A DNA stretch of 64,000 nucleotides, taken from the IMG/VR virus record IMGVR_UViG_3300024308_000018, positions 1-64,000 of that record, one strand, 5' to 3'. The first letter of the stretch is position 1. Each line of letters opens with the position of its first letter. Of this stretch, positions 8,200 to 29,989 are shown in pieces. The notes beneath the pieces are model-generated. The model did not search any database and was not told the DNA's origin. It saw only the letters and a list, made by a program, of their open reading frames with translations. The position numbers and the translations under genes are program-made.

Positions 8200-11100
8200 T
8201 TATGGGTTACCAGACATCGGATCGGTTGCGTGGTACTGGAACTCGTAGGTGTATTCCATCTGGTTGAACGGGAAGTCGTTACGATACACCACGTAGTCGA
8301 CGCCATCGATCTTCCCTTCCCACGGGCCAGTAAAGTCCCATGCGTCCGGATAATCTTTCGCGCCATCCCACGAACCAGCGAAGCCGTACTGACCGCCCAC
8401 CGCAACGAAGCCCGGCTTGCCGTCAATAGAAGTTACGGAACGCACATATGCGTAACCGCACTTGGCTTTCGGCATCGCGAAGTATCCCCACTTGTCGTTA
8501 TCTTGGGTAGAAGAGAACGCAGGCATGTAGATACGGTCAGACACGGTGCCCGTGAGTTCTTGCGTCAGGCTATCGAGGAAAGCCTTGTTGAACCCAGAGG
8601 GACTGTTGACCCGCGAGACAATGCCGAACTTGATCTTGGATTCCCCAATGGGAGGAACGCTGGTGTCGGTGATAGTCACAGTCTTGGTCGCCGTCTTGGT
8701 AACGCCGCCCTCAGTGTACGAGGCGGTGATTACGATGTTGGTGTTGGCCGCTACTGCCGGAGTGGTCAGGATGCCAGACGAAGAGATCGACACACCAGTC
8801 AGGCCGCCCGCGTTGCTAATGCTCCACGTGGGGTTGACGTTCTTGGTGCTGTTGTCGCTCATGGTGGCAACGCAGGTGTAAGTTGCGGTGGCCGTACTCT
8901 CGGCGGCAGTGTTCGGGCCCTGAATCACGATGGAGCTGAGAACAAGCGGCACGTTCTTGATCACGATGTCCTTGTCCGCAGTCCAGCTCTTGCCTTCGGC
9001 GGTTACCGTACCACGAATGGTCAGCGGCACATCCGCAGAAACCTGACTCGCCGTTACAACGTTGCCGCTGATGGTGGCGTTACTGGTCGGCGTCACGAAC
9101 GTGAGCGCGGGCGTACTGAAGAGGGATTTGGATCCGTCTTCGAGCGTGGCTTCCATGGTGTAGGTGCCCGTCTGACCTTCGGTAATCTGTGCAGGGCCCA
9201 ACAGTGCGACCGACACAATATTGCCGAGGTTGACGATGTTCACGTTCAGCGTAGCAGTGAACGCTTGGCCCGCCTTCACGGCCTTCAGCTCAATGACGAC
9301 CGGAGTGTTCGCCAGAACTTTCGGCCAAGTCGCGAGACCAGCAGCCGAGATGGTGCCGACGCCAGACTTGATTGTCCACGAAGTGATGGAGTCGGGAGCA
9401 ACTTTGCTGCCGTCACTCATGGTAATCTGAGCGCTGTACTGCGACGTGGTGTTCTCGTTGGCAGTAGTCGGGCCGAGAATCTGCATGGACGCAGGCAACA
9501 CCGCACGATCCTTGATGGTTACGTCGATGGTATCGGACTTCACGATGCCGCCGATGTTCGCACGCAGCGAAATGGTGACCAGAGTGTCCTGAGTTACCTG
9601 CTGCGCGACCAGCATACCGACGTTGGAGATAGTGCTAGTGCCCGTTACCTGCCACTGCTCCATTTCACCGGGAGCTACACCACGCACGCTACCGTCAGAG
9701 AAGTAGGCGTCCGCTTGGTACTGCGTCGAGCTGCCTTCGTCTACGGAAGTCGCGCCCGTGATCACAATGCTTTCCAGCGTGATGATCACTTCGTTCTTGA
9801 CCATGAGGTCAAGGTGGCCTTGGATTGCGTAGCCCGCAACAGTCGCCTTACAGGTGACGGTGTTAGGAGTATCAATCGTTACCTCGGGCGCAGTGAACAC
9901 GCCGGACGCACCGGATGCCGCGATGCTGCCGACCAGAGTTTCCCAGCCAGTGAGTTCCGCAACCTTCAGGTCTTCCTTGCTGCCGTCGCTGTAGACAACT
10001 TTGGCAGTGTAGGTCGAACTGGTCTTCTCTTGTACCAGAGTAGCACCCAGAACTTGAATGGATTCCGGAATACGCTCGGGCGGGTTGCTCACGTTGCGCA
10101 GCGTGATATTCTTGGTTGCGGTGACCGTCACACCATTGACCATTTTGGTGGCCGTCAGGATTGCAGCTTCATCGGCAGCGACTTCGGCGGCTGCGACCTT
10201 GTTGCCAGTCACGGTGCCTTTCGGGTTGTCACACTTGAAGGAATCGACCGTGGTCTGTTCCTGTGTGCCGTCGTTGTACGCTACGTAGAACGCGTAAGCC
10301 TGTTCGGTGTGCTCGTCGATAACCGCAGCACCTTGGATGGTGAGGGTCACTGGCTTGAACTGGCGAATCAGCACGTCGTGGGTATCGGTCAGGCCGTCTT
10401 TCACGGCGGACAGAGTTACCACGGTGTCTTGGGTTACGCGCTTCGCAACACCGACGAACCCGTTGAGGGCCAGCGCATCGTTGTTGTTCGATGCGAACGT
10501 ATCGGGAATCAGAGCCGCGCTGCTGCCGTCGCTGTAGTGGCCGACGACGCCGAACGTGGTTTGATCCGCAGGCATCATCTCGGTGACACCGACGATCTCG
10601 ATACTGACCAGCGTGACGACGGTGGACTTAACGATGATGCGCAGCAGGTACTCGGCTTCTACCCACTTGTTGAACACGACGTCGCGCAACTTAACCTTGA
10701 CGGTCAGGTCGGTGTCGAACTGCAACTTCGGACAGGTGACAACGCCAGTAGCCGGATCGATGGTCACGCCAACGGTGTTCTGCTGAATGCTCCACACCAG
10801 ACCCTCGGGGTCAACTTCGGTGCGGTCAGTCCAGATAGCCGTGCCGATCAGATCCATCGTGCCGTTGTCGTTCATGTACGACGCGTTGCCCGGCAGGCTG
10901 ATGATTACGCGTTCGAGGCGCGGGCTTACCCAGTCGATGTGCTCGATGGTGGGCTTGCCCCAGCGTGCGTAATACACGTTGCGGTCGGTGGGATGGGCGC
11001 GAACCAGATACAGGATGTCACCAGCAGCCGGGGCGTTGCCCTCGATGATTGCGTAGTGAGTGGCGCTGATCTTTACCAGCTTGCGCGGGTAGTCCGGGTG

Positions 11101-12852: not shown

Positions 12853-14511
12853 TTACTGGATTTCGGTGGCCCGAGAACCCTTCGGATTGATGTTGTAGCG
12901 GAAGAAGATCCGACGCACGGAGTTCGCCGGGTCGATGATCACGTCCAGAATCAGATCACCGTTAGCGATAGCGGTGTTCGGGTTGTTGGTGTGGTCACAG
13001 ATAACCTCGAACGGAGTAGCGCCGTCCACAGTGTTGAATGCACCCAGCAGGTTCAGGGCACTCAGCTCGTCGGTCGCCTTGGTTTTCAGATCCTGACGGA
13101 GCACAATGTCGTTGGGATCGAAGAGACCGTACTTGGCGCGGGCCGCTACCAGTTCCAGAACGCGACCGCTGACCGCACTGGCGTTGATGTTGCGCAGCGC
13201 AGACGGGCGACGGTACAGTGTGAGCTGTTCCCAGACGGCAAAGCTGCCTCCAATCTCGTCCGGCATCTTGCGGGCGTAGTTGATCTGGGCGTTGGTCAAC
13301 ACGTTACGCATCGGCTGATCGTAAATGATGTTGGTGCCGAGAACCTTGATGTGTTCACTCATGCGAAGACCAGCAGGAGCGCGCACAAAGTTTGCAGCAG
13401 CATACGCACCAGCAGCAAAAGCGACCACAGGCACATAGACTTTGCGAGCTTCTTGATCATCGAAGACCAAGAAGTCCCCGACGTAAAGGGCACCGTAGTA
13501 AGTGTCCAAGTTGAGAGTCTGTTCACGGTACTTAACAGCCTCACGCACGGAATGCTTATCGCTGGCAATCTGCATGAAGGCACGGCAGTTGTTATGGACG
13601 GCAGATGCGGCGACCATTGCGCGGTGAACGATGTGATCGTTACCTTGGCAGTTCAGCAACATGTGCGGGGAAAGTTGTTCAGGGTCACTGAAGAACTTGG
13701 CGTAGGCTTGCGCGATTTCATCGCTGGTTGCACGACGGCCAGCTGTACCACCACGCATGTCGGACTTCGCGGTGCGCAGGACGGGGACAGCAGGGCAGCT
13801 CTTGTTACGCTTGAAGCGCAGGATCTTACTGTCGCGTTCCAGAACTTCGGACAGCTCGTACTGGCGGCCCTCGCCGTCGACGTAGTGGTCGAAGGTGACG
13901 AGGTGGCTTTCGTTGGGCATTGCGCCAGCAACGTAGTTCTCGAAAACCTGCACACGGAAGATCGTCGGGTCGTACTCGCCACGGTTCTTGATAGGGTCAA
14001 GGCCCTTGGGTACGTTCGGCTGCACGAATACCAGCGTGCCTTCGGCCCAGTCGCCGGGGTTTGCTTGGAAGAAGCAGCCGAGCACGGTGTCGATCAGCGG
14101 GTCGGTGGGCAGCCAGCCGAGTTCGTCGGGAGACAGTACGCCCTCGACCTCGCCGTTTGCATTGGTGCGCGGGGACAGGTTGATCTTCGGAACGTTGGCT
14201 TTCGGGTCATCCACGGACAGGTTCAACACGGCGTAGTGCGCTTCCGGCGCGAGACGCAGGTTGTAGAGTTGGTTCGTGAACTTGTGAACGAGTTCAGCGA
14301 ACGTGCCCATGTACCCGAACTTTTTGTGGTTGCGCTTACCGAAGTATGCAGTCCAGTCGTCGGCCGTCAGGGAACGAAACACCATGTTGACGGGGCCGCG
14401 CTCAGCTTCACCAACCATCGCGACACGCAGGCCGCTGTTGACGATGTTGAGGCGAGAGAAATCTCGGATCTTGGTATATACACCAGCCGAGCTATGCGGA
14501 ACATTACTCAT
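12853..14511 (-). CDS. Contractile tail sheath protein
   Basis: Start revised to 14511 (ATGA overlap with the lysozyme stop). N-terminal AGVY...D.S and G.AERGPVN; C-terminal APAG, LFDPND, EVICD.TNN....I.NG.L..D are characteristic sheath motifs. Confidence 0.9.
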   Translation of the reverse strand: MSNVPHSSAGVYTKIRDFSRLNIVNSGLRVAMVGEAERGPVNMVFRSLTADDWTAYFGKRNHKKFGYMGTFAELVHKFTNQLYNLRLAPEAHYAVLNLSVDDPKANVPKINLSPRTNANGEVEGVLSPDELGWLPTDPLIDTVLGCFFQANPGDWAEGTLVFVQPNVPKGLDPIKNRGEYDPTIFRVQVFENYVAGAMPNESHLVTFDHYVDGEGRQYELSEVLERDSKILRFKRNKSCPAVPVLRTAKSDMRGGTAGRRATSDEIAQAYAKFFSDPEQLSPHMLLNCQGNDHIVHRAMVAASAVHNNCRAFMQIASDKHSVREAVKYREQTLNLDTYYGALYVGDFLVFDDQEARKVYVPVVAFAAGAYAAANFVRAPAGLRMSEHIKVLGTNIIYDQPMRNVLTNAQINYARKMPDEIGGSFAVWEQLTLYRRPSALRNINASAVSGRVLELVAARAKYGLFDPNDIVLRQDLKTKATDELSALNLLGAFNTVDGATPFEVICDHTNNPNTAIANGDLILDVIIDPANSVRRIFFRYNINPKGSRATEIQ

Positions 14512-20312: not shown

Positions 20313-22520
20313 TTACATAGTGCCCAGCCCAGAATTGAGCAGCATGCGCACGGCAGCAGGGTTGAAGTCTGCACCGAATCTGTCACGCAATTCCTCTTCG
20401 ATAGTGACGCCATGTTCCTGTGCATCTTCCACCGACTCTTGAACGTTGTACGCTGCTTGCATCAGCGGGAACATTCGGGCCACACGCAAGAACGACGGAA
20501 CGTTGCGGAGAGCTTGCTTCAGCAACGTCAGCATCTTGTTGGCGGTCTTCGGGTCAGCAGCGATTGCATTCATTACCGATCCGAAGGGGCCGCCATTGAA
20601 GTCCTCGGTGTTTGCCAGCGCCATGATACGAACGGGAGCAGCAGAAATCCACGACGTGATTCCAAGCGCGCCCTCAATTTCGCCGCGACCCCCGCTGCCG
20701 TTCAATAGCACGTCGAGACCGATCATTGCCATGGCGGGCTCAGTCCACAGCGCGTCCGGAATAGCATGGAAGAACTCGGGCCCATACTGCGGGCCTGACA
20801 TTGCTCCCTCAAAGGGAAGCATCAGCTTCACCATGAAGTTGCCACGTTTGGTTTCGTCCTTCATGTAATCCGCAATGCGCTTTGCAAGGTACGGACGCAT
20901 AGCGCTGATTGCCGTGTCGTTGGTGTCGTTGGCATACGTGCTATGCACCAGCAACGGCATCAGGTAGCTACCACGGAAAGCAGTCGCCCACTTGTCGGCA
21001 GGCATGCGCTCAATCAGCAGCTTCATCGTTGCTGGGCTGTGCGTACTGCCAGTCGACCGTCCCCTTACAAACTCGTTGTTGGCGGCTTCGACGAACTTCT
21101 TGAACATTGCGGGCATCTTGGTGTCGGGAGCAAGTGCGGCCTCGTAATACGGCGGCAGCTCGTCGACACCTTCATCCGCCCACGTCCGCTTCAAGATTTT
21201 GAGTTCGGCCTTGGTGAGGGTAACGCGGTGCCAGTTGTTGTGCGTGTCGGTCGTCATCAGTGACAACGCCTTCGCCGGAGAGATCCCAAACTTCGGAGCC
21301 GCGTCGAGCAGCGGACGACTGGCTTCCACATCCATCAGCATGGTGTAGAGGCGGGACATTGAAATGTCGCGTTCGGCGCGTACCGTGGAGGCCGCAACCT
21401 TGAACGCGTCAATCTCCGACAGCAGCTTCTGGCCCATCAGAGCGGATACCCGCAGCAGCGCAAGCGCGTCGTGCGTTACGAACGTGCTCGGGTTGTGGCA
21501 ATATCCGCGCGCTGCGATTTCCGCACAGTCCTTATAGGCGAGCGTGACCGCGTTGTCCTCGACGAGGATTCGGATCTTGCGCACGGCGCTCTCGGCCAGC
21601 CGCATATCCATCTCTTTCGAGTTGATCGCGTTGACCAGAGCGTAGAACTCGGACGCATCGGAACCGAACTTGGTCTCGAACATCCCCAACTCTTCCACTA
21701 CGGATTTGGGATTGGCGCGCAGCGACTTTTCCAACTCCTTCAGCGCGGTTGCCGGATCGTAGTTGTCATTGACTACAGTCTTGCGTCCATCGTTGTAGAG
21801 GTCGTCGAGCAGATCCATCGTCATGCCGTAGGGGATGCCGAAGTACGTTGCGTTCACTTCACTGCACCACTTACGCACGGTGTCGAAGAACAGTTGCGAA
21901 CGGGCGCCGTAAATGCCGGACGGGAACAGGCCCTTCTTGCCGTTCTCTGCACGATAGACACGCAGCAAGATACGGGCGCTCGGGCGCTGCAAGTTCAGGT
22001 CGTCTTTGCCCACAAGGTACGCGATGATCGATCCCTGAATGATGTCGTCCTTGACGTACTTGGCGTTGGAGCCGCCGACAAGGTGCATGCAGCTTACCCA
22101 ACCACGATCTGTCGACATGCCCGCCACGTCGTAAGGGTGGCGGGAGATCACGATCATCTGATTGCCTGACGCCGCGTTGCGTGCGTTACTACGCGACTTG
22201 TCGTTGGCGAACACCTTCTGCAACTCCGGCGTCAGCAGCTTACCGATCTTGATGCGACGTTTACCGCTGGCGTCCACGGCGATCCCCGTGATGTAGTCCT
22301 CGACAACGTAACCCTTTTCCGCAACTGACTTCTGGATTGCTTCAGGTACTGGGGCGTAAGCCACACGTTTTGCACCAGCCACTAGCGGCAAGTGGATGCG
22401 GTAGTTATTACGGTCACCAGTGTACTTGCGAAACAGATCGGCGTAGCGTTCTTTGTTCCACCCCTTCACGTACTGTCGGTATTGGCTGGGTTTCAGCGCC
22501 GACGTTGAGATGTTGATCAT
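20313..22520 (-). CDS. Putative internal virion protein (735 aa): conserved N-domain with RGW.SCM motif plus unique C-region
   Basis: The first ~245 aa align with 22524..25169 (SRHPYDVAGMSTDRGW.SCM, IAYLV, ARIL.RV, GLFPSG.YG, KWCSEVN). Begins MINISTSA. Confidence 0.7.
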   Translation of the reverse strand: MINISTSALKPSQYRQYVKGWNKERYADLFRKYTGDRNNYRIHLPLVAGAKRVAYAPVPEAIQKSVAEKGYVVEDYITGIAVDASGKRRIKIGKLLTPELQKVFANDKSRSNARNAASGNQMIVISRHPYDVAGMSTDRGWVSCMHLVGGSNAKYVKDDIIQGSIIAYLVGKDDLNLQRPSARILLRVYRAENGKKGLFPSGIYGARSQLFFDTVRKWCSEVNATYFGIPYGMTMDLLDDLYNDGRKTVVNDNYDPATALKELEKSLRANPKSVVEELGMFETKFGSDASEFYALVNAINSKEMDMRLAESAVRKIRILVEDNAVTLAYKDCAEIAARGYCHNPSTFVTHDALALLRVSALMGQKLLSEIDAFKVAASTVRAERDISMSRLYTMLMDVEASRPLLDAAPKFGISPAKALSLMTTDTHNNWHRVTLTKAELKILKRTWADEGVDELPPYYEAALAPDTKMPAMFKKFVEAANNEFVRGRSTGSTHSPATMKLLIERMPADKWATAFRGSYLMPLLVHSTYANDTNDTAISAMRPYLAKRIADYMKDETKRGNFMVKLMLPFEGAMSGPQYGPEFFHAIPDALWTEPAMAMIGLDVLLNGSGGRGEIEGALGITSWISAAPVRIMALANTEDFNGGPFGSVMNAIAADPKTANKMLTLLKQALRNVPSFLRVARMFPLMQAAYNVQESVEDAQEHGVTIEEELRDRFGADFNPAAVRMLLNSGLGTM

Positions 22521-22523
22521 TGA

Positions 22524-25169
22524 TTACTCCTGTGCCAGTCCAATAAGGGCTGCGGCGTAACGGGTGACGTCAGCCGGATTTGGCTTACGGGGCGAGAGGC
22601 GGCGGCGAAGTCCCGGCTCAATCGCGAGTTCGACACGACGCTGTAGCGAGACGTCTTCTTCGAAGTCTTCCTCTTCGTCAGCCACCAAGCGGTCAATCAT
22701 GCTTTGGATGCCTGCTTTGACTTTGTAGGTAAAGGTCTCGTTACCTATGGCAGCACGCAGCTTAGGCGGCAGCTTCGCCATGAAGGCGGTAACGCCCTCT
22801 TCCAGCTGCTTCCATGCAGGGCTCGCGATAGTGTCGAGCAGCTGGATCGGCAGTAACCGCTCGATGTAGTCGATGCGCCCTTTGTCGTCAAAGTCTTCGC
22901 TATCGAAGATGTAGTGCAGGGCCAGCAGCATCTCCATCTCTGGAGTCCGCCGCTTCGGCAACGCTGCCGTCAGTATCCGAGCAGAGTCAATACCTAGCGC
23001 ATGGTCGCACCCAGTAACGAAAGGAATTGCCACCATCAGATACGGAGCAAGCGGAGATCCCAGCGCCACAATCTGCGTATGCGACAGACCATGATACGAG
23101 ATGTCGACCTCGTTGTTCGGGTCGTGGGAGTTGAACATCTTCTCCATAGTGACCAACGCTGCATCTTCGGTGCTGATACTTGCGATCATTGCCGCGCGCA
23201 TAGTCTTGGACAATTTCTTGAACAGTGCGCTGTTGCCGAAGAGTGGGCTGCTCTTACGTGTGTGCATCAGGCCGCGCTTCTCCCCAGTGTAGAGGGATTC
23301 CGCAACACGAATCAGAATATCACTGCCGAGCAATGCGGGGTCTGAAGGTGCAGCCGCCGTCCATTCTTCAATGAACTTGGCTACGTTGTATCCCTCGCGG
23401 CGGATATGGGCGGCCAGCAACGCAACAGCGATGGAGGTTTTGTTGCCTGCCTTCAGGGTCTCAATCACCGATTCCAGACTCTTGGCGTTTAGGGCGGAGC
23501 GCAAGGTTCCCACAGATCTGCTCATGGGCATGGCGTTCACGCGAGCGAACGCAATAAACTCCGGCTTCGGATTGAACTGGGGAGCGTAGCTAATGCGCAT
23601 ACCGCTGATGTCCACAAGCCCATCCTTACCAACTTGCTTGAGCAGCTGCTTGATCGTAATGCGGCCTCGGCAGTAGTTGGCAAACTGTGCGAGCAGGTAG
23701 TCGTCGGATCCTTCTTCAAAGGACGCTGCAAGTTTCTTTGCATCCTCTTCTTCAAGGTAGAGGCCGAACAGAAGGTCGGCAACATTGGCCCCATCCCGAT
23801 CAGAAAGAGCGTCGACGTATGACGGCTCGTTCGAATAGATGTTCTCACCCTGATACTGCGCTAACTTGAACAGGTCTTTGATGAAGGTGACGACATCATC
23901 TCCGGAGTACGGGCTACTCTTGAAGTGATCGGAGGACAGACTAAACACCAGTGACTCAAAGCCTTTAATCTCCATCCACGTGTTAAACTGCTTGAAGACT
24001 TTGATGTTCGGCTCCCGCTTCGTCGCATTGGTGCGGGCCAGCGAGATCATCTGGGCGATGCAGCTAGTCAGGTACTCACGACTTGCGTCCGGCAGTCGCT
24101 GCACGTTGGTTATCAAGTTCTGGTCGCGCAGATGAATCATAGCACGCGGCACAAACACCGAACGTATGGCTTTCACCGAAGAGGGGTACTTGGCCTCGAA
24201 CACCTTGGCAGATTGAATAACGCTGTCTGCTTGCTTGGCGCTGGCATCGTATGAATTTGGATCAAACCCAGCGGCGCGCGCTTCACGGTCTGCCATGTTG
24301 TCCACGAGAACCACATAGGTATTGCGAAGTACCGCTTCTGAAATTTTGGATGGTGCGGTAGGTGCGTCGAGCAACGTGCGGATATTGGCAGCAGCGGTAT
24401 CCTCTTGCGGCAGGTGCGTCTCACGGGTCGCTGAGTCCGGATACAGCGACGAGAGCATTTTCATGGTCGTGCCGTAGGGGATCTTGAAGAACTTGGAGTT
24501 CACTTCACTGCACCACTTGGAGACCGTTAGGGCAAACGCGTCCGGCGCAGTTCCGTACACTCCTGACGGGAACAGTCCGATCTTGCCCTTGGCCTTGAAC
24601 ACGCGCATCAGGATTCTGGCTTTAGGTGACTGGATATTCAAGTCAGTGGCATCGACAAGATACGCAATGAGCGAGCCTTCTTTGACATCCTTGTTGACGT
24701 AGTGCTTGTTCTGACCGTCGATCAGATTCATGCAGCTAGTCCAGCCACGGTCAGTCGACATGCCAGCAACGTCATAAGGGTGACGCGAAATAACAACGGT
24801 CAGAGCACCAGACTTCTGCTTTGCCGCGCCCCGGCGTTTGTCGTTAGCAAACTCCTGCGCCACGTCGGAAGACTTCAGGATCTTACCGATGCGCACGCGG
24901 CGTTTACCAGTAGCGGAGTCCACGGCATAACCGCCGATGTAATCGTCAACGATGTAGCCAGCAGATTCCACGGCGGCCTTGACTGACGGCAGCGGCTCCA
25001 CTGGCTTTGCATCACGCGCTAAGGTCTTAGCAAGAGGCAGTGAGAAGCGGTATGCTTTAGGATCCGAAGTGTAGGCAGCAAATATGTCTGCGTACCGTCC
25101 CTTATCCCAGCCGCGCACAAACTTGCGATACTGGCTCGGCTTCAACGCCGATGTTGAAATATGAAGCAT
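22524..25169 (-). CDS. Putative internal virion protein (881 aa), paralogue of 20313..22520
   Basis: Same N-domain with an unrelated helical C-region. Begins MLHISTSA. Confidence 0.7.
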   Translation of the reverse strand: MLHISTSALKPSQYRKFVRGWDKGRYADIFAAYTSDPKAYRFSLPLAKTLARDAKPVEPLPSVKAAVESAGYIVDDYIGGYAVDSATGKRRVRIGKILKSSDVAQEFANDKRRGAAKQKSGALTVVISRHPYDVAGMSTDRGWTSCMNLIDGQNKHYVNKDVKEGSLIAYLVDATDLNIQSPKARILMRVFKAKGKIGLFPSGVYGTAPDAFALTVSKWCSEVNSKFFKIPYGTTMKMLSSLYPDSATRETHLPQEDTAAANIRTLLDAPTAPSKISEAVLRNTYVVLVDNMADREARAAGFDPNSYDASAKQADSVIQSAKVFEAKYPSSVKAIRSVFVPRAMIHLRDQNLITNVQRLPDASREYLTSCIAQMISLARTNATKREPNIKVFKQFNTWMEIKGFESLVFSLSSDHFKSSPYSGDDVVTFIKDLFKLAQYQGENIYSNEPSYVDALSDRDGANVADLLFGLYLEEEDAKKLAASFEEGSDDYLLAQFANYCRGRITIKQLLKQVGKDGLVDISGMRISYAPQFNPKPEFIAFARVNAMPMSRSVGTLRSALNAKSLESVIETLKAGNKTSIAVALLAAHIRREGYNVAKFIEEWTAAAPSDPALLGSDILIRVAESLYTGEKRGLMHTRKSSPLFGNSALFKKLSKTMRAAMIASISTEDAALVTMEKMFNSHDPNNEVDISYHGLSHTQIVALGSPLAPYLMVAIPFVTGCDHALGIDSARILTAALPKRRTPEMEMLLALHYIFDSEDFDDKGRIDYIERLLPIQLLDTIASPAWKQLEEGVTAFMAKLPPKLRAAIGNETFTYKVKAGIQSMIDRLVADEEEDFEEDVSLQRRVELAIEPGLRRRLSPRKPNPADVTRYAAALIGLAQE

Positions 25170-25178
25170 GGAATTTCC

Positions 25179-26018
25179 TTACAGCGCGTTCAGGGAGCCG
25201 ATATAGAGAACCTTATACAGCTTGCCAGTGGCCTTGTCGGTGACGACCTTCTCAACCAAGTTGCAATTGACGCCGTGACTGCGGTAGTGAGCAGCAATGT
25301 TGCTCGGACGTGCGACGCCCGTGGCGCTGTACTGAGTTGCACTGCCGAGGTTGATGCCACACACGCGGCACTTGGCGAACCCACGGAACTCAACAGCTTT
25401 GACTGACTTGAAGGCAATGGTCGGTGCCGAGCCCATCATGGCGAACAGGTCAGAGCGCGGAATCGTACCGTATAGGGTCTTGACCTTGCGAGTGACTGGG
25501 CCGTAGGCGAACGGCCAGAACATGAGGTGCGTGCCAGTATCGGTCTTCACTTCCTTGATAGCCAGCAACGCGGTGCCGAGCGCAATCACTTTCTTGGCGA
25601 GCGCCGTGCCATACTTGGCGGTGACTTCGGCGCGCTGCTCCTTGGTCAACTTGGCTGGGGCCTTCGCCTTGAACTTGATTTGCTTGCGCGCCTGTTCAGA
25701 TCCGGCCTTGGGGCCTATGGCCGCGAGCTTGGCTTTCAGCATATCGCCGCGCTTGGAGGCAGTCGTGCTTTGGGTGGAAGTAAGTCGGGCACCTACGCGA
25801 GGGGCGGGAAATTCCAGAAGCATTTTGCCGTCGTGTTTGACGAACACGTGGCCGCCTTGCTGGTCGTAAGTGATCACAACGTTATCGCCAGATGCAGTGT
25901 ACTTGGTGCCTCGCTTGGATGTTTTGATTCCAGACAGGCCAGCACGCTGTGCAATGATGCGCGCGAACAACTCGGGAGGGGTAGGCAGGTTGGCTGAGAT
26001 TGACAGTTGAATTTTCAT
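25179..26018 (-). CDS. Putative internal virion protein with a C-terminal Zn-binding (CxxC...HxxxH) domain
   Basis: Begins MKIQLSISA; basic; contains RG...CRVC...HYRSH. Confidence 0.65.
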   Translation of the reverse strand: MKIQLSISANLPTPPELFARIIAQRAGLSGIKTSKRGTKYTASGDNVVITYDQQGGHVFVKHDGKMLLEFPAPRVGARLTSTQSTTASKRGDMLKAKLAAIGPKAGSEQARKQIKFKAKAPAKLTKEQRAEVTAKYGTALAKKVIALGTALLAIKEVKTDTGTHLMFWPFAYGPVTRKVKTLYGTIPRSDLFAMMGSAPTIAFKSVKAVEFRGFAKCRVCGINLGSATQYSATGVARPSNIAAHYRSHGVNCNLVEKVVTDKATGKLYKVLYIGSLNAL

Positions 26019-26027
26019 GACAGATCC

Positions 26028-26456
26028 TTACCAGTCGTCGGCGACTGCTGGGCTATCTTGGCGGCGACGTTCGTCAAACTTGCGGCGGTCGGCTTCGCGT
26101 CGGTTGATGATGTACTCGGCGTAGTCATGCGCAGTACGCAGACCGAACTTCTTCATCTCAAGCAAGAGACGGTCGAGGCGCGTGCGATCCTTCATCATGC
26201 GAGAGCCCGCAGCACGTGACGCATTCTGGAACGCGGCAGACAGCTGACGTTCGAGGTCTTCGGCGTAACGTAGGTAACCGAGGAATCGCTTGTCGATTCC
26301 CTTGACGTCGTAGATCGCATCGTAGGTGTCGAACTCGGGGTCAGCAGTCAGGCGCAGCACGTGAAGCGCGGAACTCAGAATAGTCTCAAGTCCACGGCCA
26401 CTGTCGCCATACTTTGGGGCGGGTGCCTGTTTGTCCACCGCTTCTTCGATAGACAA
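26028..26456 (-). CDS. Hypothetical protein or orphaned 3' gene fragment
   Basis: Protein-like 142-aa frame with only a TTG start near its 5' end. Overlaps the upstream ORF by 71 nt. Confidence 0.5.
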   Translation of the reverse strand: MSIEEAVDKQAPAPKYGDSGRGLETILSSALHVLRLTADPEFDTYDAIYDVKGIDKRFLGYLRYAEDLERQLSAAFQNASRAAGSRMMKDRTRLDRLLLEMKKFGLRTAHDYAEYIINRREADRRKFDERRRQDSPAVADDW

Positions 26457-26904
26457 GCGGCCCTTCCCTGCCGATCACGTGGTCGTAACCAGCGGCCTTG
26501 AGCATGTCGACGATGCTCTTGTCCTCCATGTACCACGCCCAGACTTTCTTGAACTTGCCAGTGTCCTTTTCAGTCATATCGAACAACTGATCCATTACGT
26601 TGCGATACTGCGCTTTGGTCATAGAGCCGCTGTTCGCTCTGTTATTCACGGCGGTCTTGATGCGGTCGAGTACGTCGGCTCGCTTTACCTCCGTGTCGAA
26701 CGTGCGGAAGCCGAAGTTGAACCCGTGGTTGACGTTCACGGAGAAGCGCATCAGGTGGCGCGGGTCACCAGCGTAACGCATTGCGTACTGACGATCAGTT
26801 GTGAGCCACACGATATGCGAGCGGTCATGAACGGCTTGGTCAAACGCAACTTGCAGGCCACGGTAATAAATCCTGTGGCCCGATAGTGAGAGTTGGATTT
26901 GCAT
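26386..26904 (-). CDS. ADP-ribosyltransferase-like protein (ART-PolyVal-like), possibly C-terminally disrupted
   Basis: YYRG, VWLTT...YA..YA and GYD.V...E motifs parallel those of the upstream ART. Begins MQIQLSLSG. The tail after GREG looks out of frame. Confidence 0.55.
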   Translation of the reverse strand: MQIQLSLSGHRIYYRGLQVAFDQAVHDRSHIVWLTTDRQYAMRYAGDPRHLMRFSVNVNHGFNFGFRTFDTEVKRADVLDRIKTAVNNRANSGSMTKAQYRNVMDQLFDMTEKDTGKFKKVWAWYMEDKSIVDMLKAAGYDHVIGREGPLVYRRSGGQTGTRPKVWRQWPWT

Positions 26905-26913
26905 CTTGGTTCC

Positions 26914-27630
26914 CTAGTCGGTGATGTCGGCAACGCGACGGTAACGTCCACTGTTACCTACAGCGGATTTGATCTGCAACGGAGAGAACACGACGTACAC
27001 GTCGCCTCCCGGTCGCCGGGCAACGACACCATCGTATCCGGTAGCCGCAGCGAAAATCTCTGGGAAGTGTCCAGCGGTAGGCTGCCCCTCGTAGAGGTCG
27101 CTCCACAACATCATCGACGCGTGAATCAGATCGTGTCCGATGTAGTTCTCGGCGTATTCGTGGATACTGCGTTGCATGCCCTGAAATTCCACGTCGTAGT
27201 TGTCGCGGATGAAGCGTTCAAGGTTGCGGCGGCCGAGGCCAGTCAACATCTTGCTTACTTGCGTGCGGGTAATCTTCGGCTGGCGGTAGAAGTCGATGGG
27301 CTTCTTGATGCGCAGGTACACGGGCATGACGTTACTGCTCTCAGGGTCAGTGCCGTCCTTTCCCGTAACGCGGTCAATCTTGTTGCGCGTGTAGGTGTTC
27401 GCCATCTCTGGCGCGCTTGTGAAGTAGTAGCCAATCCCGTACTGGTCAACGCCGGAGCCGATGTACTTGGGGTCGAACTGCTTGAATTCTTTGGGAGTGC
27501 CATGGTAACAACGCAGAGGCGCACCAGACTTGTCGCGAACCACACTTTTGCCGAACCAACGTTCGAACTTTGCAAGTTCTGCGGAGGTCAATGCCGAATA
27601 CGCTTTCGACATTGAAAGTTGGATTTTCAT
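26914..27630 (-). CDS. ADP-ribosyltransferase-like protein (ART-PolyVal family)
   Basis: F..WFG.S.V.D..G.PL..YHGT, G.G.YFT, A..Y, V.PVYL.I..P, GYDG and YVVF.P.QIKSA.GN.G match the ART domain of phage polyvalent proteins. Confidence 0.85.
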   Translation of the reverse strand: MKIQLSMSKAYSALTSAELAKFERWFGKSVVRDKSGAPLRCYHGTPKEFKQFDPKYIGSGVDQYGIGYYFTSAPEMANTYTRNKIDRVTGKDGTDPESSNVMPVYLRIKKPIDFYRQPKITRTQVSKMLTGLGRRNLERFIRDNYDVEFQGMQRSIHEYAENYIGHDLIHASMMLWSDLYEGQPTAGHFPEIFAAATGYDGVVARRPGGDVYVVFSPLQIKSAVGNSGRYRRVADITD

Positions 27631-27655
27631 CGCGATACCTCTTGGTGAATGTAGA

Positions 27656-27666
27656 GCAAAATTAGC
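27656..27666 (-). promoter_or_regulatory. Putative late promoter (GCTAATTTTGC)
   Basis: Just downstream of a terminator and 25 nt before ATG 27630 (GAGG RBS). Confidence 0.6.
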
Positions 27667-27670
27667 GACG

Positions 27671-27707
27671 GAAACGCGAAAGGGGCAGGCAAATGCCCAC
27701 CCCCTTC
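27671..27707 (-). terminator. Rho-independent terminator
   Basis: Minus strand aagggggtgggc-attt-gcctgcccctttc..gtttc. Confidence 0.7.
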
Positions 27708-27729
27708 TACAGGTTGCCTTGTTCGTCGG

Positions 27730-27870
27730 TTAGTGCGACCAGAATTCGCATGCAATACCTGCAAGAGCAACGTGCGTGCTCCTACCGCCGGAAGCGTTGG
27801 AATCTGTCCAACTCAGGTCTAGGTGTGCACCAAGGCTAATGCACGCTAAACAAATCAGGAACCAGATCAC
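27730..27870 (-). CDS. Possible 46-aa hydrophobic peptide
   Basis: GTG overlaps the upstream TGA (GTGA). Reads MIWFLICLACISLGAHLDLSW...EFWSH and fills the gap before the terminator. Confidence 0.4.
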   Translation of the reverse strand: MIWFLICLACISLGAHLDLSWTDSNASGGRSTHVALAGIACEFWSH

Positions 27871-29030
27871 TCAGCGTCGTCGCCGCCGAGGATGGATTCA
27901 GCGAACTGACGAGCCGCGCTACCGTTGAGGGTAGGCAGGATCAGCAGTGCGTCGTACAGGGAATCGAACTCGCCGACGTGACGGCCACCGGAGGCACGCA
28001 ACGCCAACGCAGTTTGCTTGTTACCCAGACCGTTGTAGAGGTTGGATTTGCCTTGGTCGTTGTACGCCAACTGGGCGAACTGGTTGGCGGCAGTGCGGCG
28101 TTGAGTTGCAGCGTTTTTGTAGGCCATGTCCAAATGCTCTTTGGTTGCCTGTGGGTTGCCGCTGGCCGCCAACAGACCAGAACGGTAGCCGTCGAGGTAC
28201 GAACGGATTTCGGTGACGGAACGGAAGAACCAGATGGTTCGGAATTCGGCACCTGTGTCTGGATCCGGAATGTTGGCGAACGCGGTTTCCGGAGTAGCGG
28301 CGGGCCGGATGTCCAGTACCTGCTGGAACAGGGTTTCCAGCGCAGCGGCATCGTACTGCGAACCGCGTACCACGAAACGCACGCTCTTCATCACGGTCTC
28401 TGCATCTTCCAGAGTGAGACCTTCGACGGCTTCACTGAGGCGGTGGATCACGAAGTGGCGAATGCTGTCCAGCGTGTCACCCAGACAGTGCTTATGCGAA
28501 TAGCGCGGTGCACTGGCGGCAGCATGAGCTTGCGGGGAGGCATTGGCCCACCACGCCTGAGTGGACTTGGATACGGTACGGCCGTAACGGCGGATCTGGG
28601 CGTCGACGTCGAAGTTCCAGCTGCGGACAACTACGCTCGGGGAAACAACGGAGTCACCGCAGAGATCCGAATCGTCGTTTGGGCCACGGGCGCGTTCACG
28701 GTGAGATTCCAGCGCGGACTCCGCAACGGCGTCGACCAGATCGGACGGCATGGCGCGGGAGGCGTCCATGTAGATGGCACCGAGGCTGGCGATTGCGGTG
28801 GAGGCCAGCACGTCCATACCTTCGATGTCCAGCAGGATCACGGGGGACGGCAGGATCTCGGAAGAGCTGCGACGAGTCGGCAACGCGTGCGCTTCGGCTA
28901 CGCTGTTCAACAGCGCTTCGCGCGTGCTGACTTCGGTCACGACTTCGGGCTCGGGTGCCTGATTGGCTTTCGGTGCACTCTTTTTCGCAGTGGGCTTCTG
29001 CCCATCGACGTTTACTTTCTTTGCAGTCAT
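27867..29030 (-). CDS. DEDD 3'-5' exonuclease (Rv2179c/ExoVIII-like)
   Basis: Motifs LLDIEG, IASLGA, ST.AWW, RG..YD...L, EIRS and H......L.DA. Start revised to 29030 (AAGGA RBS). Confidence 0.7.
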   Translation of the reverse strand: MTAKKVNVDGQKPTAKKSAPKANQAPEPEVVTEVSTREALLNSVAEAHALPTRRSSSEILPSPVILLDIEGMDVLASTAIASLGAIYMDASRAMPSDLVDAVAESALESHRERARGPNDDSDLCGDSVVSPSVVVRSWNFDVDAQIRRYGRTVSKSTQAWWANASPQAHAAASAPRYSHKHCLGDTLDSIRHFVIHRLSEAVEGLTLEDAETVMKSVRFVVRGSQYDAAALETLFQQVLDIRPAATPETAFANIPDPDTGAEFRTIWFFRSVTEIRSYLDGYRSGLLAASGNPQATKEHLDMAYKNAATQRRTAANQFAQLAYNDQGKSNLYNGLGNKQTALALRASGGRHVGEFDSLYDALLILPTLNGSAARQFAESILGGDDAE

Positions 29031-29113
29031 TTCTATTTCCTTGTTACATGATCCAAACCCATCTGGGTTCAATGAATTGGCCGAAGGCTGGCCCCGGCCA
29101 ATAGTAGGCAGAC

Positions 29114-29989
29114 CTAGAAGCGGTCGACGTCGTTACCAAGCACCGTAATGTGCGGACGGCGCTGTCGGGCAAACAACTCGACGGTCGGATACTTCTTGAG
29201 GTCATATAGACGGTTTACAGATTTGTAGAACGCTTCAGGCTTCTGACTGTGCTCACGCAACGCTTCGTAGATAACCTGCTTGACGTTGTTGTTGAAGCGC
29301 GGAATGCGCTTGCCGCGAACACCAATCAACACGAACTCGCTGTTGCTGCGGGTGTAGTGACCGCCGCCCATGAAGTCGATGTCGGTTTGCAGCTTGTTGC
29401 GCTTGACCCACACGAACGCGTTGGTCTTGTACTTGAAGCCCCACGCGCGCATTACGGCTTTCGCTTCATCCAGCAGCGGCCACGTTCCCCAGAGAAGAAG
29501 CACGGCATCTTTTGCCACAATGCTGTTCACATCGAGGTTCTTGATGTCGCGCAACTTCATGACCGGATACTTGAACTCGGCACCCCGCTCGCCAGCTGCC
29601 GCCTTGTCCTCGTACTCCCACGGAGGATCCGCGATTACGATGTTGAACTTCTTGCCTTTGCGAGCCAGCTTCTTGACTTGCTGGTGAATCGGCGACGCCT
29701 TCTCGTCGAAGGGCACGAACTTCTCGCGGCGAGTTTTCATCTGAGATGCGCAACCGTCAGCAATGATGTTCGCCACGGCGTGCAGCACCTTGCGCGGATT
29801 CGGCTCATTCTCCTGATAACGCAACTGGCGCAGAAGACGACGCATCGAGTCCTCTGTCCGGTTCGTTGGTTCGAGCAGCTGGTTGATGATCAAGGCCAAG
29901 TCGCATTCCGCATCAGTGGCAATGCCAATAACGCGGTTATCAACGTTCAGTGAGCCGAGCGTCCCATTCGTGTTACGCTCTATAATCAC
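29114..29989 (-). CDS. MT-A70 family N6-adenine methyltransferase
   Basis: Motifs IADPPW, LLLW, WGF.YKT..FVWVK, G.YTR.NSE, HSQKP and ELFAR. Confidence 0.92.
   Translation of the reverse strand: MIIERNTNGTLGSLNVDNRVIGIATDAECDLALIINQLLEPTNRTEDSMRRLLRQLRYQENEPNPRKVLHAVANIIADGCASQMKTRREKFVPFDEKASPIHQQVKKLARKGKKFNIVIADPPWEYEDKAAAGERGAEFKYPVMKLRDIKNLDVNSIVAKDAVLLLWGTWPLLDEAKAVMRAWGFKYKTNAFVWVKRNKLQTDIDFMGGGHYTRSNSEFVLIGVRGKRIPRFNNNVKQVIYEALREHSQKPEAFYKSVNRLYDLKKYPTVELFARQRRPHITVLGNDVDRF

Follow-up and report, generated by a model that had tools for sequence, protein, structure and literature searches.

What two adjacent ADP-ribosyltransferase-like (ART) genes contribute to a phage is a question raised by the 229.7-kb genome of a contractile-tailed jumbo phage recovered from a subsurface metagenome. 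Within the window analyzed here (a 64,000-nucleotide stretch of this genome), two such ORFs lie next to each other on the minus strand, where a preliminary description had placed them, with the motif pairs YHGT...YYFTS and YYRG...VWLTT that it had reported. That description took them for a tandem of two injected enzymes with different targets. We lean slightly toward a reading in which the ORFs belong to a cassette of genes tagged by a common N-terminal leader, whose products would be loaded into the virion and injected into the host, with the first gene (ART1) active and the second (ART2) broken. The features on which the argument depends are as follows.

27678..27707, minus strand: 13-bp G+C-rich hairpin (RNA fold -28.9 kcal/mol, z = -3.0)
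26914..27630, minus strand: ART1 (ORF1), 238 aa, intact stand-alone ART-PolyVal, His type
27607..27630, minus strand: ART1 leader codons, MKIQLSMS; common N-terminal motif M-x-[IVL]-x-[LIVMF]-S-x-S
26882..26997, minus strand: junction module (ART1 gene 3' end, ribosome-binding site and ART2 leader), from overlapping blastn matches
26386..26904, minus strand: ART2 ORF (ORF2), 172 aa, Arg type, incomplete
26881..26904, minus strand: ART2 leader codons, MQIQLSLS; residues 1-8 disordered in the AF2 model (pLDDT below 50)
26458..26904, minus strand: native part of ART2, residues 1-149, ending ...GREGP (homologue alignment, hhalign and AF2)
26458..26465, strand not applicable: deletion junction, an 8-nt microhomology, AAGGGCCG on the minus strand
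26386..26457, minus strand: out-of-frame tail of ART2, 23 codons LVYRRSGGQTGTRPKVWRQWPWT plus stop (three-frame reading and alignments)
26028..26457, minus strand: remnant of a 310-315-aa leader-bearing gene, its C-terminal ~142 codons; the first ~170 codons are deleted
25179..26018, minus strand: 279-aa protein, function unassigned; leader MKIQLSIS, conserved in relatives

ART1 and the Arg-type ART2 family

ART1 carries the motifs ...RCYHGT...GIGYYFTS... and matches the Pfam family ART-PolyVal (PF18760) over profile positions 1-139 of 140 with 86.6 bits (E 3.6e-24), a score so far above the cut-off of 31.2 that the match is not due to chance. A scan of the 229.7-kb genome returned it as the sole PF18760 match (85.9 bits). 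The active site published for ART-PolyVal (Tox-ART-HYD2 clade) is H-Y-D, with His on strand 1, Tyr on strand 2 and Asp on strand 5 (PMC5512222), and at the level of sequence it is matched in ART1 by H43 (19/19 in family alignment A4), Y69 (18/19) and D200 (19/19). The assignment of D200, and of D141 in ART2, to strand 5 comes from alignment, hhalign to a modelled homologue and predicted secondary structure, not from coordinates. A doubt had been raised about ART1 activity because a D-V-Y stands where a catalytic Glu is often found, but this pointed to the wrong residue: the Asp of D-V-Y is D210, present in only 6/19 family members, and the conserved acidic residue is D200, within GYDG. The family also shares an invariant C-terminal motif, QIKSAxGNxG, and ART1 is under strong purifying selection (dN/dS versus relatives of 0.02-0.05).

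ART1 is thus predicted to be an intact His-Tyr-Asp ART-PolyVal enzyme, which, early in infection, would most likely transfer ADP-ribose from NAD+ to a host macromolecule. It could instead be an NAD+-consuming or NAD+-binding protein (a NADase or decoy) or a catalytically dead scaffold, and not a macromolecule transferase. The ART1 subfamily does not have the Glu six residues past the conserved Asp that is invariant in the Arg-type subfamily (57/57), and ART-fold toxins among the structural matches described below (RES, MbcT) degrade NAD+ without ADP-ribose transfer. We nonetheless judge this alternative decidedly unlikely given the invariance or near-invariance of H, Y and D, the low dN/dS, the published H-Y-D site of the family, and the example of AcrIF11, a small Asp-type phage ART that is a specific protein transferase.

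The second ORF (motifs ...IYYRGL...IVWLTT...) has no BLASTP similarity to ART1 and no match in Pfam or PHROG, and its stand-alone homologues P0029 and P0030 do not match PF18760 either. Its relationship to ARTs emerged from family profiles and models. The ART2 and ART1 family profiles align in hhalign with a probability of 97.7% (E 2.3e-12, 163 columns), and the ART2 profile covers the residues that Pfam calls ART-PolyVal in the larger proteins P0046, P0049, P0050, P0052 and P0063. An AF2 model of the intact homologue P0001, built from a 57-sequence alignment, reached a pLDDT of 90.6, an earlier run with the ten close homologues (164-170 aa) having been unusable (pLDDT 59). Against BFVD the model gave 25 matches at E<=1e-3, many of them named ART-PolyVal, and in a PDB-wide structural search ART-superfamily titles were found for 33 of the 34 top matches; the one exception, 9k3a_B, ranked first, and the AcrIF11 structure 6kyf was second (Z 6.5). 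Single PDB fold scores were modest (Z 5-6.8; best Foldseek E 0.029), Foldseek against Swiss-Prot models returned weak ART-flavoured matches only (RES, MbcT and ParT; best E 0.18), and the sequence profiles of both families found nothing significant among PDB chains. Judged by profiles and models, the ART2 family is a divergent, mostly Arg-type sister branch of ART-PolyVal, in line with the ART fold first proposed for both ORFs. Because the present Pfam model misses this branch, its genes are annotated less often than they occur.

ART2 does not have the H-Y-D configuration: Arg and Trp take the place of His and Tyr, the conserved family columns being R15 (55/57), W33 (55/57), D141 (46/57) and E147 (57/57). 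Both proteins stand alone and differ in His versus Arg at the strand-1 residue, as had been noticed from the start, but two general statements attached to that observation had to be revised. Such ARTs were said to occur usually as domains of giant proteins, yet stand-alone forms are common in the Arg-type branch, where 62 of the 103 cluster representatives have <=260 aa and 12, the five larger proteins named above among them, lie inside proteins of >1000 aa. His versus Arg was also said to separate ART clades; orthologous mini-ARTs of 147 and 149 aa with 60% identity carry YYHGT and FYRGV, respectively, and a residue this labile is a weak guide to separate clades or targets.

A deletion that truncates ART2

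ART2 is cut after residue 149, and its last 23 residues (150-172) are read out of frame into the remnant of another gene. In alignment A1 it diverges from the ten homologues after GREGP, its tail standing where all of them have ...SDDVPTIGVFDPxNVKVE, and in the model of the intact homologue two strands (153-158 and 164-167) lie past the break point. About 3,555 bp carried by near-identical phages are absent here. Homology to four relatives in blastn ends at 26458-26462, and in contigs of runs X13 and X4 the two sides of the junction lie about 3.55 kb apart, with 26458-26465 fitting either side. Contigs from X1, the source run, and from X3, a second sample, read across the junction without differences, and a second JGI assembly (229,747 bp) has an identical sequence at this locus; the deleted form was seen in three assemblies from one study, and near-identical phages elsewhere have the intact ART2 form. 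Going by the nearest sampled relative, L011, whose Arg-type gene is intact at 169 aa, the lost segment would have contained genes for 103-aa and 67-aa proteins and a NUDIX hydrolase gene. Judging from relatives, a 310-aa gene lost its first ~170 codons to the same deletion. What is left of it matches residues 171-310 of the 310-aa protein of L002 (BLASTP 63% identity, E 6e-59), and its sole possible starts are TTG or GTG codons within the ART2 tail.

The tandem of ARTs was therefore half right: ORF1 is intact, but the ART sequence of ORF2 stops at residue 149. The idea of a pair of enzymes with separate targets does not fit this genome, since the Arg-type gene lost its last two β-strands in the 3.55-kb deletion, and from alignments and models ART2 is here most likely an inactive remnant. 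Its dN/dS of 0.08-0.16 is not evidence of function; relaxation of the kind seen in pseudogenes is absent, which makes a recent deletion probable. It could be argued that the shortened ART2 is functional and that both ORFs as written are active injected enzymes with different targets, as the truncated protein keeps R15, W33, D141 and E147 and the deleted form is stable across the three assemblies. We find this highly improbable: the ten close homologues and the wider family have two more β-strands where this copy has 23 unrelated residues, the break arose as a side effect of a deletion that halved another gene as well, and near-identical phages have kept the gene intact. The deletion, a natural one, indicates that in at least one environment the phage can do without the NUDIX gene, the Arg-type ART and the genes next to them, as expected of accessory arms-race genes.

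A shared leader in a variable cassette

ART1, ART2 and the 279-aa neighbor, the last cassette gene with a full leader, all start with the same eight-residue sequence, M-x-I-Q-L-S-x-S. The 279-aa protein has no significant match in Pfam or PHROG. Leader-bearing genes number three in the window and one elsewhere in the genome, ten in L001 and six in L002, and six are found in the distant cultured Dickeya phage JA11. Serine codons of the leader alternate between TCN and AGY, which indicates selection on the leader peptide. At the DNA level, a stretch of the leader region is itself repeated, so that gene conversion could add to the uniformity within a genome. We found no description of the M-x-I-Q-L-S-x-S leader, and no virion proteome of leader-bearing relatives, in the literature.

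The gene content of the cassette varies among L001, L002, L006, L011 and the window, and the cassettes of relatives include ART-PolyVal several times, NUDIX and a weak zincin-like match. L001 has two copies of the junction module, which form a 117-nt direct repeat (family D3, 83% identity, spacing 762 nt) and flank an extra 250-aa ART-PolyVal gene. On balance, the cassette is probably a hypervariable set of small effector genes, of which the two ORFs are the remains in this genome. The genes just upstream of it are replication genes (methyltransferase, exonuclease), and it is outside any clear head module. A gap of 236 nt separates the exonuclease gene from ART1, and relatives have a comparable one at that position. 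The hairpin at 27678..27707 falls in this gap and may be a terminator, or mark an operon boundary, in front of the cassette. A scan of 25000-29200 for sigma-70-type promoters found none, a terminator scan of the region gave no more than chance, no exact 11-mers upstream of ART1 recurred at other genes, and a near-identity DNA search with the 5-kb region found no match among phage and plasmid records.

A parallel arrangement was found in T4-like phages. In the T4-like contig L013, MKTFKQFI.E, or a sequence close to it, opens at least seven genes, six of which are consecutive. Among them, an Arg-type homologue of ART2 is followed directly by a His-type ART-PolyVal, and the set is flanked by the sheath gene on one side and the tail-tube and portal genes on the other. 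Ten further stand-alone ART2 homologues carry MKTFKQFI.E-like leaders. We take this type of leader to resemble the capsid-targeting sequence (CTS) of T4. In T4 itself, a 10-residue N-terminal sequence is enough to load foreign proteins into heads (PMC9026906), and diverse internal proteins have only that N-terminal sequence in common (PMC9026906; PMC3012670). M-x-I-Q-L-S-x-S has no sequence likeness to the T4 CTS or to the MKTFKQFI.E-type leaders, nor a conserved Glu of the kind after which the T4 prohead protease cuts, and a search for a T4-type prohead protease (PF03420) had no match in this genome and none in control genomes either, so that its silence carries no weight. Because the ART pair recurs in two phage lineages, a heterodimer of ART1 and an intact ART2 homologue was also predicted; its score of 0.00 weighs neither for nor against binding.

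The occurrence of stand-alone ARTs with a T4-like leader in T4-like phages, together with a lineage-specific equivalent here, makes injection plausible, and this part of the preliminary description stands by analogy. The leader would act in the manner of the T4 capsid-targeting sequence, drawing unrelated proteins into the assembling virion, and the leader-bearing proteins would then enter the host together with the DNA.

It is also conceivable, if on the unlikely side, that the ARTs, like ModA and ModB of T4, are synthesized after infection as early or middle proteins and are not packaged, and that the leader serves translation start, is a degradation or localization tag, or is a by-product of recombination. 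A cassette placed after the replication genes, past a hairpin and a gap, looks like a separate transcription unit; the junction of gene end, ribosome-binding site and leader is a 38-117-nt repeat flanking a gene that is present or absent among relatives; and the literature yielded no proteomic evidence of packaging. These points are countered by the persistence of the leader peptide across distant phages despite diverged DNA and TCN/AGY switches, by the stand-alone ARTs of T4-like phages, which carry the presumably CTS-like leader among structural genes, and by the position of the fourth leader-bearing gene of this genome in the baseplate and tail-lysin module.

Under virion loading and injection, a broader proposal can be put forward tentatively, with a little less than even confidence. 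M-x-I-Q-L-S-x-S may be a virion-targeting signal, not described before, in a lineage of jumbo phages with cultured Dickeya phages among its members, and the cassette may be a 'polyvalent protein in pieces', i.e., a shuffling set of co-injected effectors (several ART types, NUDIX, a zincin-like protein and unknowns) that are gained and lost by recombination at the gene-end/RBS/leader junctions, with the pair of His- and Arg-type ARTs as recurrent cargo. In this lineage, which has members in culture, one simple sequence tag marks a full set of effectors that are candidates for injection. Should the tag prove to direct packaging, N-termini would suffice to list candidate injected proteins for host takeover and anti-defense, the T4 capsid-targeting principle would extend to an unrelated lineage, and large phage heads could be loaded with foreign proteins by means of a small handle.

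Comparison with known systems

ART1 is a new member, and ART2 a broken member, of kinds of protein that are already known. With ART-PolyVal, ART1 shares a score well above the cut-off and H, Y and D at the family positions, and the ART2 family is related by profile and fold and also occurs within proteins of 2-5 thousand residues. Here, in contrast, both are stand-alone, and a giant ART-bearing protein was not found in this genome; the ART2 branch differs further in its Arg, Trp and invariant Glu, which Pfam misses, and in the truncation of the present copy. Members of the R-S-E clade (T4 Alt, ModA and ModB, cholera-toxin-like) are recognized by Arg on strand 1, Ser-Thr-Ser on strand 2 and Glu-x-Glu before strand 5. 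ART2 has the Arg, but its strand 2 reads W-L-T-T and it has G-R-E-G in place of E-x-E; by profile, the domains nearest to it are ART-PolyVal domains of the HYD2 type.

The anti-CRISPR AcrIF11 of phages and plasmids (6KYF, 8DWQ) has Asp-type key residues and a variable helical insert, and is an Asp-dependent phage ART that modifies a defense protein specifically (bioRxiv 10.1101/2024.08.26.609590). By analogy, it is the closest characterized counterpart of ART1 in size and chemistry, as a small stand-alone ART of a mobile element with an Asp-based site and a helical insert between core strands; it has no detectable sequence relationship to the ARTs described here, and the structural Z is only 6.5. 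We know of no packaging of AcrIF11 and of no link between ART1 or ART2 and CRISPR.

With the internal proteins of T4 and with Alt, the cassette shares a short N-terminal leader on unrelated small proteins and a gene set that is variable and dispensable. The cargo includes an ADP-ribosyltransferase in both (Alt in T4), and ART2 homologues in T4-like contigs carry the leader that we take to be CTS-like. The leader differs, being MxIQLSxS as opposed to the MKTFKQFI.E type, without the conserved Glu of a T4-type protease site. Alt, moreover, is an ART of the R-S-E clade and not one of the HYD2 clade (PMC5512222). The polyvalent proteins of phages and conjugative elements have a similar domain repertoire and a predicted early delivery with the DNA. 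They combine several domains in one giant polypeptide, whereas ART1 (238 aa) and ART2 (172 aa) are single-domain proteins, and the domains of the cassette are separate genes, each with its own leader.

The ART pair of the jumbo phage genome

The window is the initial 64 kb of one 229,746-bp contig, which was assembled from a subsurface metagenome of the JGI and is rated 100% complete. Almost all window genes lie on the minus strand, and they include a family-A DNA polymerase, a 2049-aa helicase, an MT-A70 methyltransferase, a tail sheath and tail proteins; these genes therefore identify a contractile-tailed jumbo phage. Among named phages, the JA11 group of Dickeya phages and Erwinia phage Y3 are the closest (~40% identity in the sheath protein). 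In a survey of sequencing runs with positions 25900-27700, ~60% of sampled 31-mers were present in metagenomes of several studies, taken from wastewater, wetland, fish gut and birds, so close relatives of this phage are widespread; where checked (runs X4 and X13), they have the undeleted form of ART2. The features considered first are:

26914-27630, minus strand: ART1, 238 aa, adjoining ART2, with the motifs YHGT and YYFTS
26386-26904, minus strand: ART2, 172 aa, with the motifs YYRG and VWLTT
27678-27707, minus strand: G+C-rich hairpin of 13 bp (-28.9 kcal/mol, z -3.0) in the 236-nt gap ahead of ART1

The two adjacent minus-strand ORFs and their motifs were thus present as the preliminary description had placed them, and the ART fold it assigned was correct for both. 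ART1 covered the whole Pfam ART-PolyVal model (86.6 bits, cut-off 31.2, E 3.6e-24) and was the sole match to it in a scan of the 229.7-kb genome. Its 18 homologues (28-97% identity) were alignable end to end, and dN/dS of 0.02-0.05 places ART1 under strong purifying selection. The active site of ART-PolyVal, of the Tox-ART-HYD2 clade, is described as His, Tyr and Asp in strands 1, 2 and 5, respectively (Iyer et al. 2017, PMC5512222). By alignment column counts, H43 and D200 (in GYDG) were invariant in the ART1 family and Y69 occurred in 18 of 19 sequences. Earlier doubt about the catalytic residue, centered on the 'D-V-Y' motif, was misplaced: its Asp, D210, was present in only 6 of 19 sequences and is therefore not the relevant residue, whereas the invariant D200 matches the Asp of the family site H-Y-D. 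One real difference of ART1 from other family members is the lack of Glu six residues past the conserved Asp. The C-terminal motif QIKSAVGNSGRY (residues 217-238, positions 26917-26982) was invariant throughout the ART1 family and recurred behind ART domains inside giant proteins, e.g., SQIKSATGNRGTF; a role as linker, processing site or docking site is possible. A gap comparable to that ahead of ART1 was seen at the same place in relatives, and the hairpin is a possible operon boundary.

The window ORF of ART2 had no match in Pfam or PHROG, and BLASTP detected no similarity between ART2 and ART1. A profile built from ten close homologues (164-170 aa) recovered 103 cluster representatives among 1.84 billion proteins, 62 of them ≤260 aa and 12 >1000 aa, and in five larger matches the Pfam ART-PolyVal call fell on the same residues. 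A 57-sequence alignment of the family aligned with the ART1 family over 163 columns (hhalign, 97.7%, E 2.3e-12), pairing YYRG with YHGT, VWLTT with YYFTS and GYDHV with GYDGV. The fold was modeled with AF2 on P0001, a natural intact homologue with 91% identity to the window copy across their common part, and the model was confident (pLDDT 90.6, pTM 0.83). It gave 25 matches at E<=1e-3 among viral models, many named ART-PolyVal. Exhaustive comparison with the PDB gave ART-superfamily entries, by title, in 33 of the 34 top rows (Z 3.9-6.5), including diphtheria-toxin homologues, AcrIF11 (entry 6kyf), PARPs, RES, ParT, MbcT and related toxins; each score for the predicted structure is modest, and the overall list is consistent. 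The exception was the top row, 9k3a_B (VIA, 130 residues; Z 6.8; Foldseek probability 0.94, E 0.029). Chain B of 9k3a is a component of the cyanophage A4 pre-ejectosome, and the paper describing the structure makes no mention of an ADP-ribosyltransferase-like domain; should the match hold, a solved virion ejection complex would contain an ART-like domain. Conserved family positions were R15 and W33 (each 55/57), D141 (46/57) and E147 (57/57). Based on the family matches, the fold and these residues, ART2 falls within a sister branch of ART-PolyVal, of Arg type, which the Pfam model misses.

The preliminary description had also treated His versus Arg at the first catalytic residue, here in strand 1, as separating ART clades, and had inferred two enzymes with different targets. 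Two orthologous mini-ARTs from related contigs (L001:11387-11830, 147 aa; L002:10501-10950, 149 aa), 60% identical and with sub-threshold ART-PolyVal matches, differ at this residue (YYHGT and FYRGV) and both retain D-x5-E-G (HYDAIIVSEG and HYDGIIVSEG). His also occupied the position in 2 of 57 ART2-family sequences. Judged from these alignments, the residue is labile in this ART group and a poor predictor of target class here.

Truncation of ART2

All homologues of ART2 end in ...GREG[PA]-x-D-x-[VI]-PTIGVFDPxNVKVE; after ...GREGP, the window copy continues as LVYRRSGGQTGTRPKVWRQWPWT. Homology to four related contigs breaks off at 26458-26462, and past the break the +1 frame matches residues 171-310 of a 310-aa protein (63% identity, E 6e-59), which relatives encode several genes farther downstream. 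From two metagenomes unrelated to each other, X13 (wetland) and X4 (wastewater), contigs ~90-99% identical map on both sides of the break with ~3,555 additional bases between them, and positions 26458-26465 are compatible with both sides (8-nt microhomology). The junction was spanned by contigs of X1, the likely source run, with no differences, and of X3, another sample of the same study, and the locus was identical in a second JGI assembly (229,747 bp), which shows the deletion to be real and stably present in the source population. It removed the two final β-strands predicted for ART2 (model residues 153-158 and 164-167). Judged from the part of the segment read in L011, the closest sampled relative, genes for 103-aa and 67-aa proteins and for a NUDIX hydrolase of 301 aa were lost too, as was the front of the 310-aa gene. 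In its truncated form here, ART2 most likely lacks activity.

A leader-bearing, mosaic cassette

The pair alone is an added member of a known family and a broken paralogue; the surrounding cassette, tagged and shuffling, is what deserves following. ART1, ART2 and the next complete gene share the start MKIQLS[MLI]S or MQIQLSLS:

25179-26018, minus strand: 279-aa gene, the next complete gene after ART2, beginning with the leader

Elsewhere in the 229.7-kb genome the full leader was found on one gene only (407 aa, 196636-197859; L012:5637-6860, minus strand), which had no family match. This gene starts MEIQLSVSAKK and lies beside baseplate-hub and tail-lysin/transglycosylase genes. At the same region of relatives, ten leader-headed genes were found in L001 and six in L002, including a second ART-PolyVal (250 aa, 73 bits), the 147-aa protein, a 190-aa protein (weak zincin-like match) and a NUDIX protein, and the cultured Dickeya phage JA11 has six genes with such starts around its ART1 homologue, e.g., MQIVFSLSK and MELLISLSK. 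The leader serine codons switch between TCN and AGY and third positions are variable, so conservation is of the leader peptide. In the AF2 model the leader is disordered, three residues ahead of the first core strand. The genes next downstream of the cassette (20313-22520 and 22524-25169, minus strand) encode two large paralogues of 735 and 881 aa with weak PHROG 17056 matches. Their starts, MINISTSALKPSQYR and MLHISTSALKPSQYR, may represent a shortened leader variant, [IL]-S-x-S-A.

Cassette gene content varies among close relatives. The dS values of ART1 and ART2 were discordant (0.10 vs 0.52 to L011; 0.60 vs 0.29 to L005), which points to recombination between the adjacent genes. In L001 a 117-nt direct repeat (83% identity, 9146-9262 and 9908-10024), composed of a gene end, RBS and leader, lies either side of the extra 250-aa ART-PolyVal gene, which is present in L001 and L006 and absent from the window; positions 26882-26997 of the window match both copies. 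The repeat is a likely site of cassette gain and loss by recombination. Given the varying content, discordant dS and flanking repeat, the cassette is a mosaic, with junctions that are likely recombination points.

We propose that the leader would recruit cassette proteins during particle assembly, that these would enter the host along with the DNA, and that ART1 would then move ADP-ribose from NAD+ onto a host target. The phage protein AcrIF11 is a small ART whose key residues are of the Asp type and whose helical insert is variable, and it modifies a defence protein with high specificity. By analogy, target recognition may lie in the long helical insert (model residues 75-137).

A leader-bearing counterpart in T4-like phages

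Ten stand-alone ART2-family proteins start with leaders such as MKTFKQFITE and MKSFSQFINE. One of them, P0085, is encoded in T4-like contigs, with the sheath gene on one side and the tail-tube and portal genes on the other; at this place at least seven genes (L013:8001-11538 and 13615-13980), six of them consecutive, carry the leader or a close variant (MKTFKQFI.E, MISFKQFINE, MKSFKSFINE, MIRFKEFITE). In L013 the Arg-type ART2 homologue is followed directly by a His-type ART-PolyVal, an order opposite to that in the window lineage. The capsid-targeting sequence of T4 IPIII is MKTYQEFIAE, and the MKTFKQFI.E-type leaders of L013 resemble it.

The first 10 residues of IPIII suffice to load foreign proteins into T4 heads, T-even internal proteins are diverse and have only this sequence common to all, and Alt is an ADP-ribosyltransferase that is packaged and injected (PMC9026906, PMC3012670, PMC5512222). 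From a survey of viral NAD+ systems it was concluded in general terms that myoviruses often package ARTs and Nudix proteins in their virions (PMC9503650). The injection originally suggested gains comparative support from the leaders and the T4-like parallel; of the two enzymes suggested, the second, ART2, is a deletion remnant in this genome. Because of this parallel and the T4 and myovirus literature, MxIQLSxS may be read, by analogy rather than demonstration, as a lineage-specific equivalent of the T4 capsid-targeting leader.
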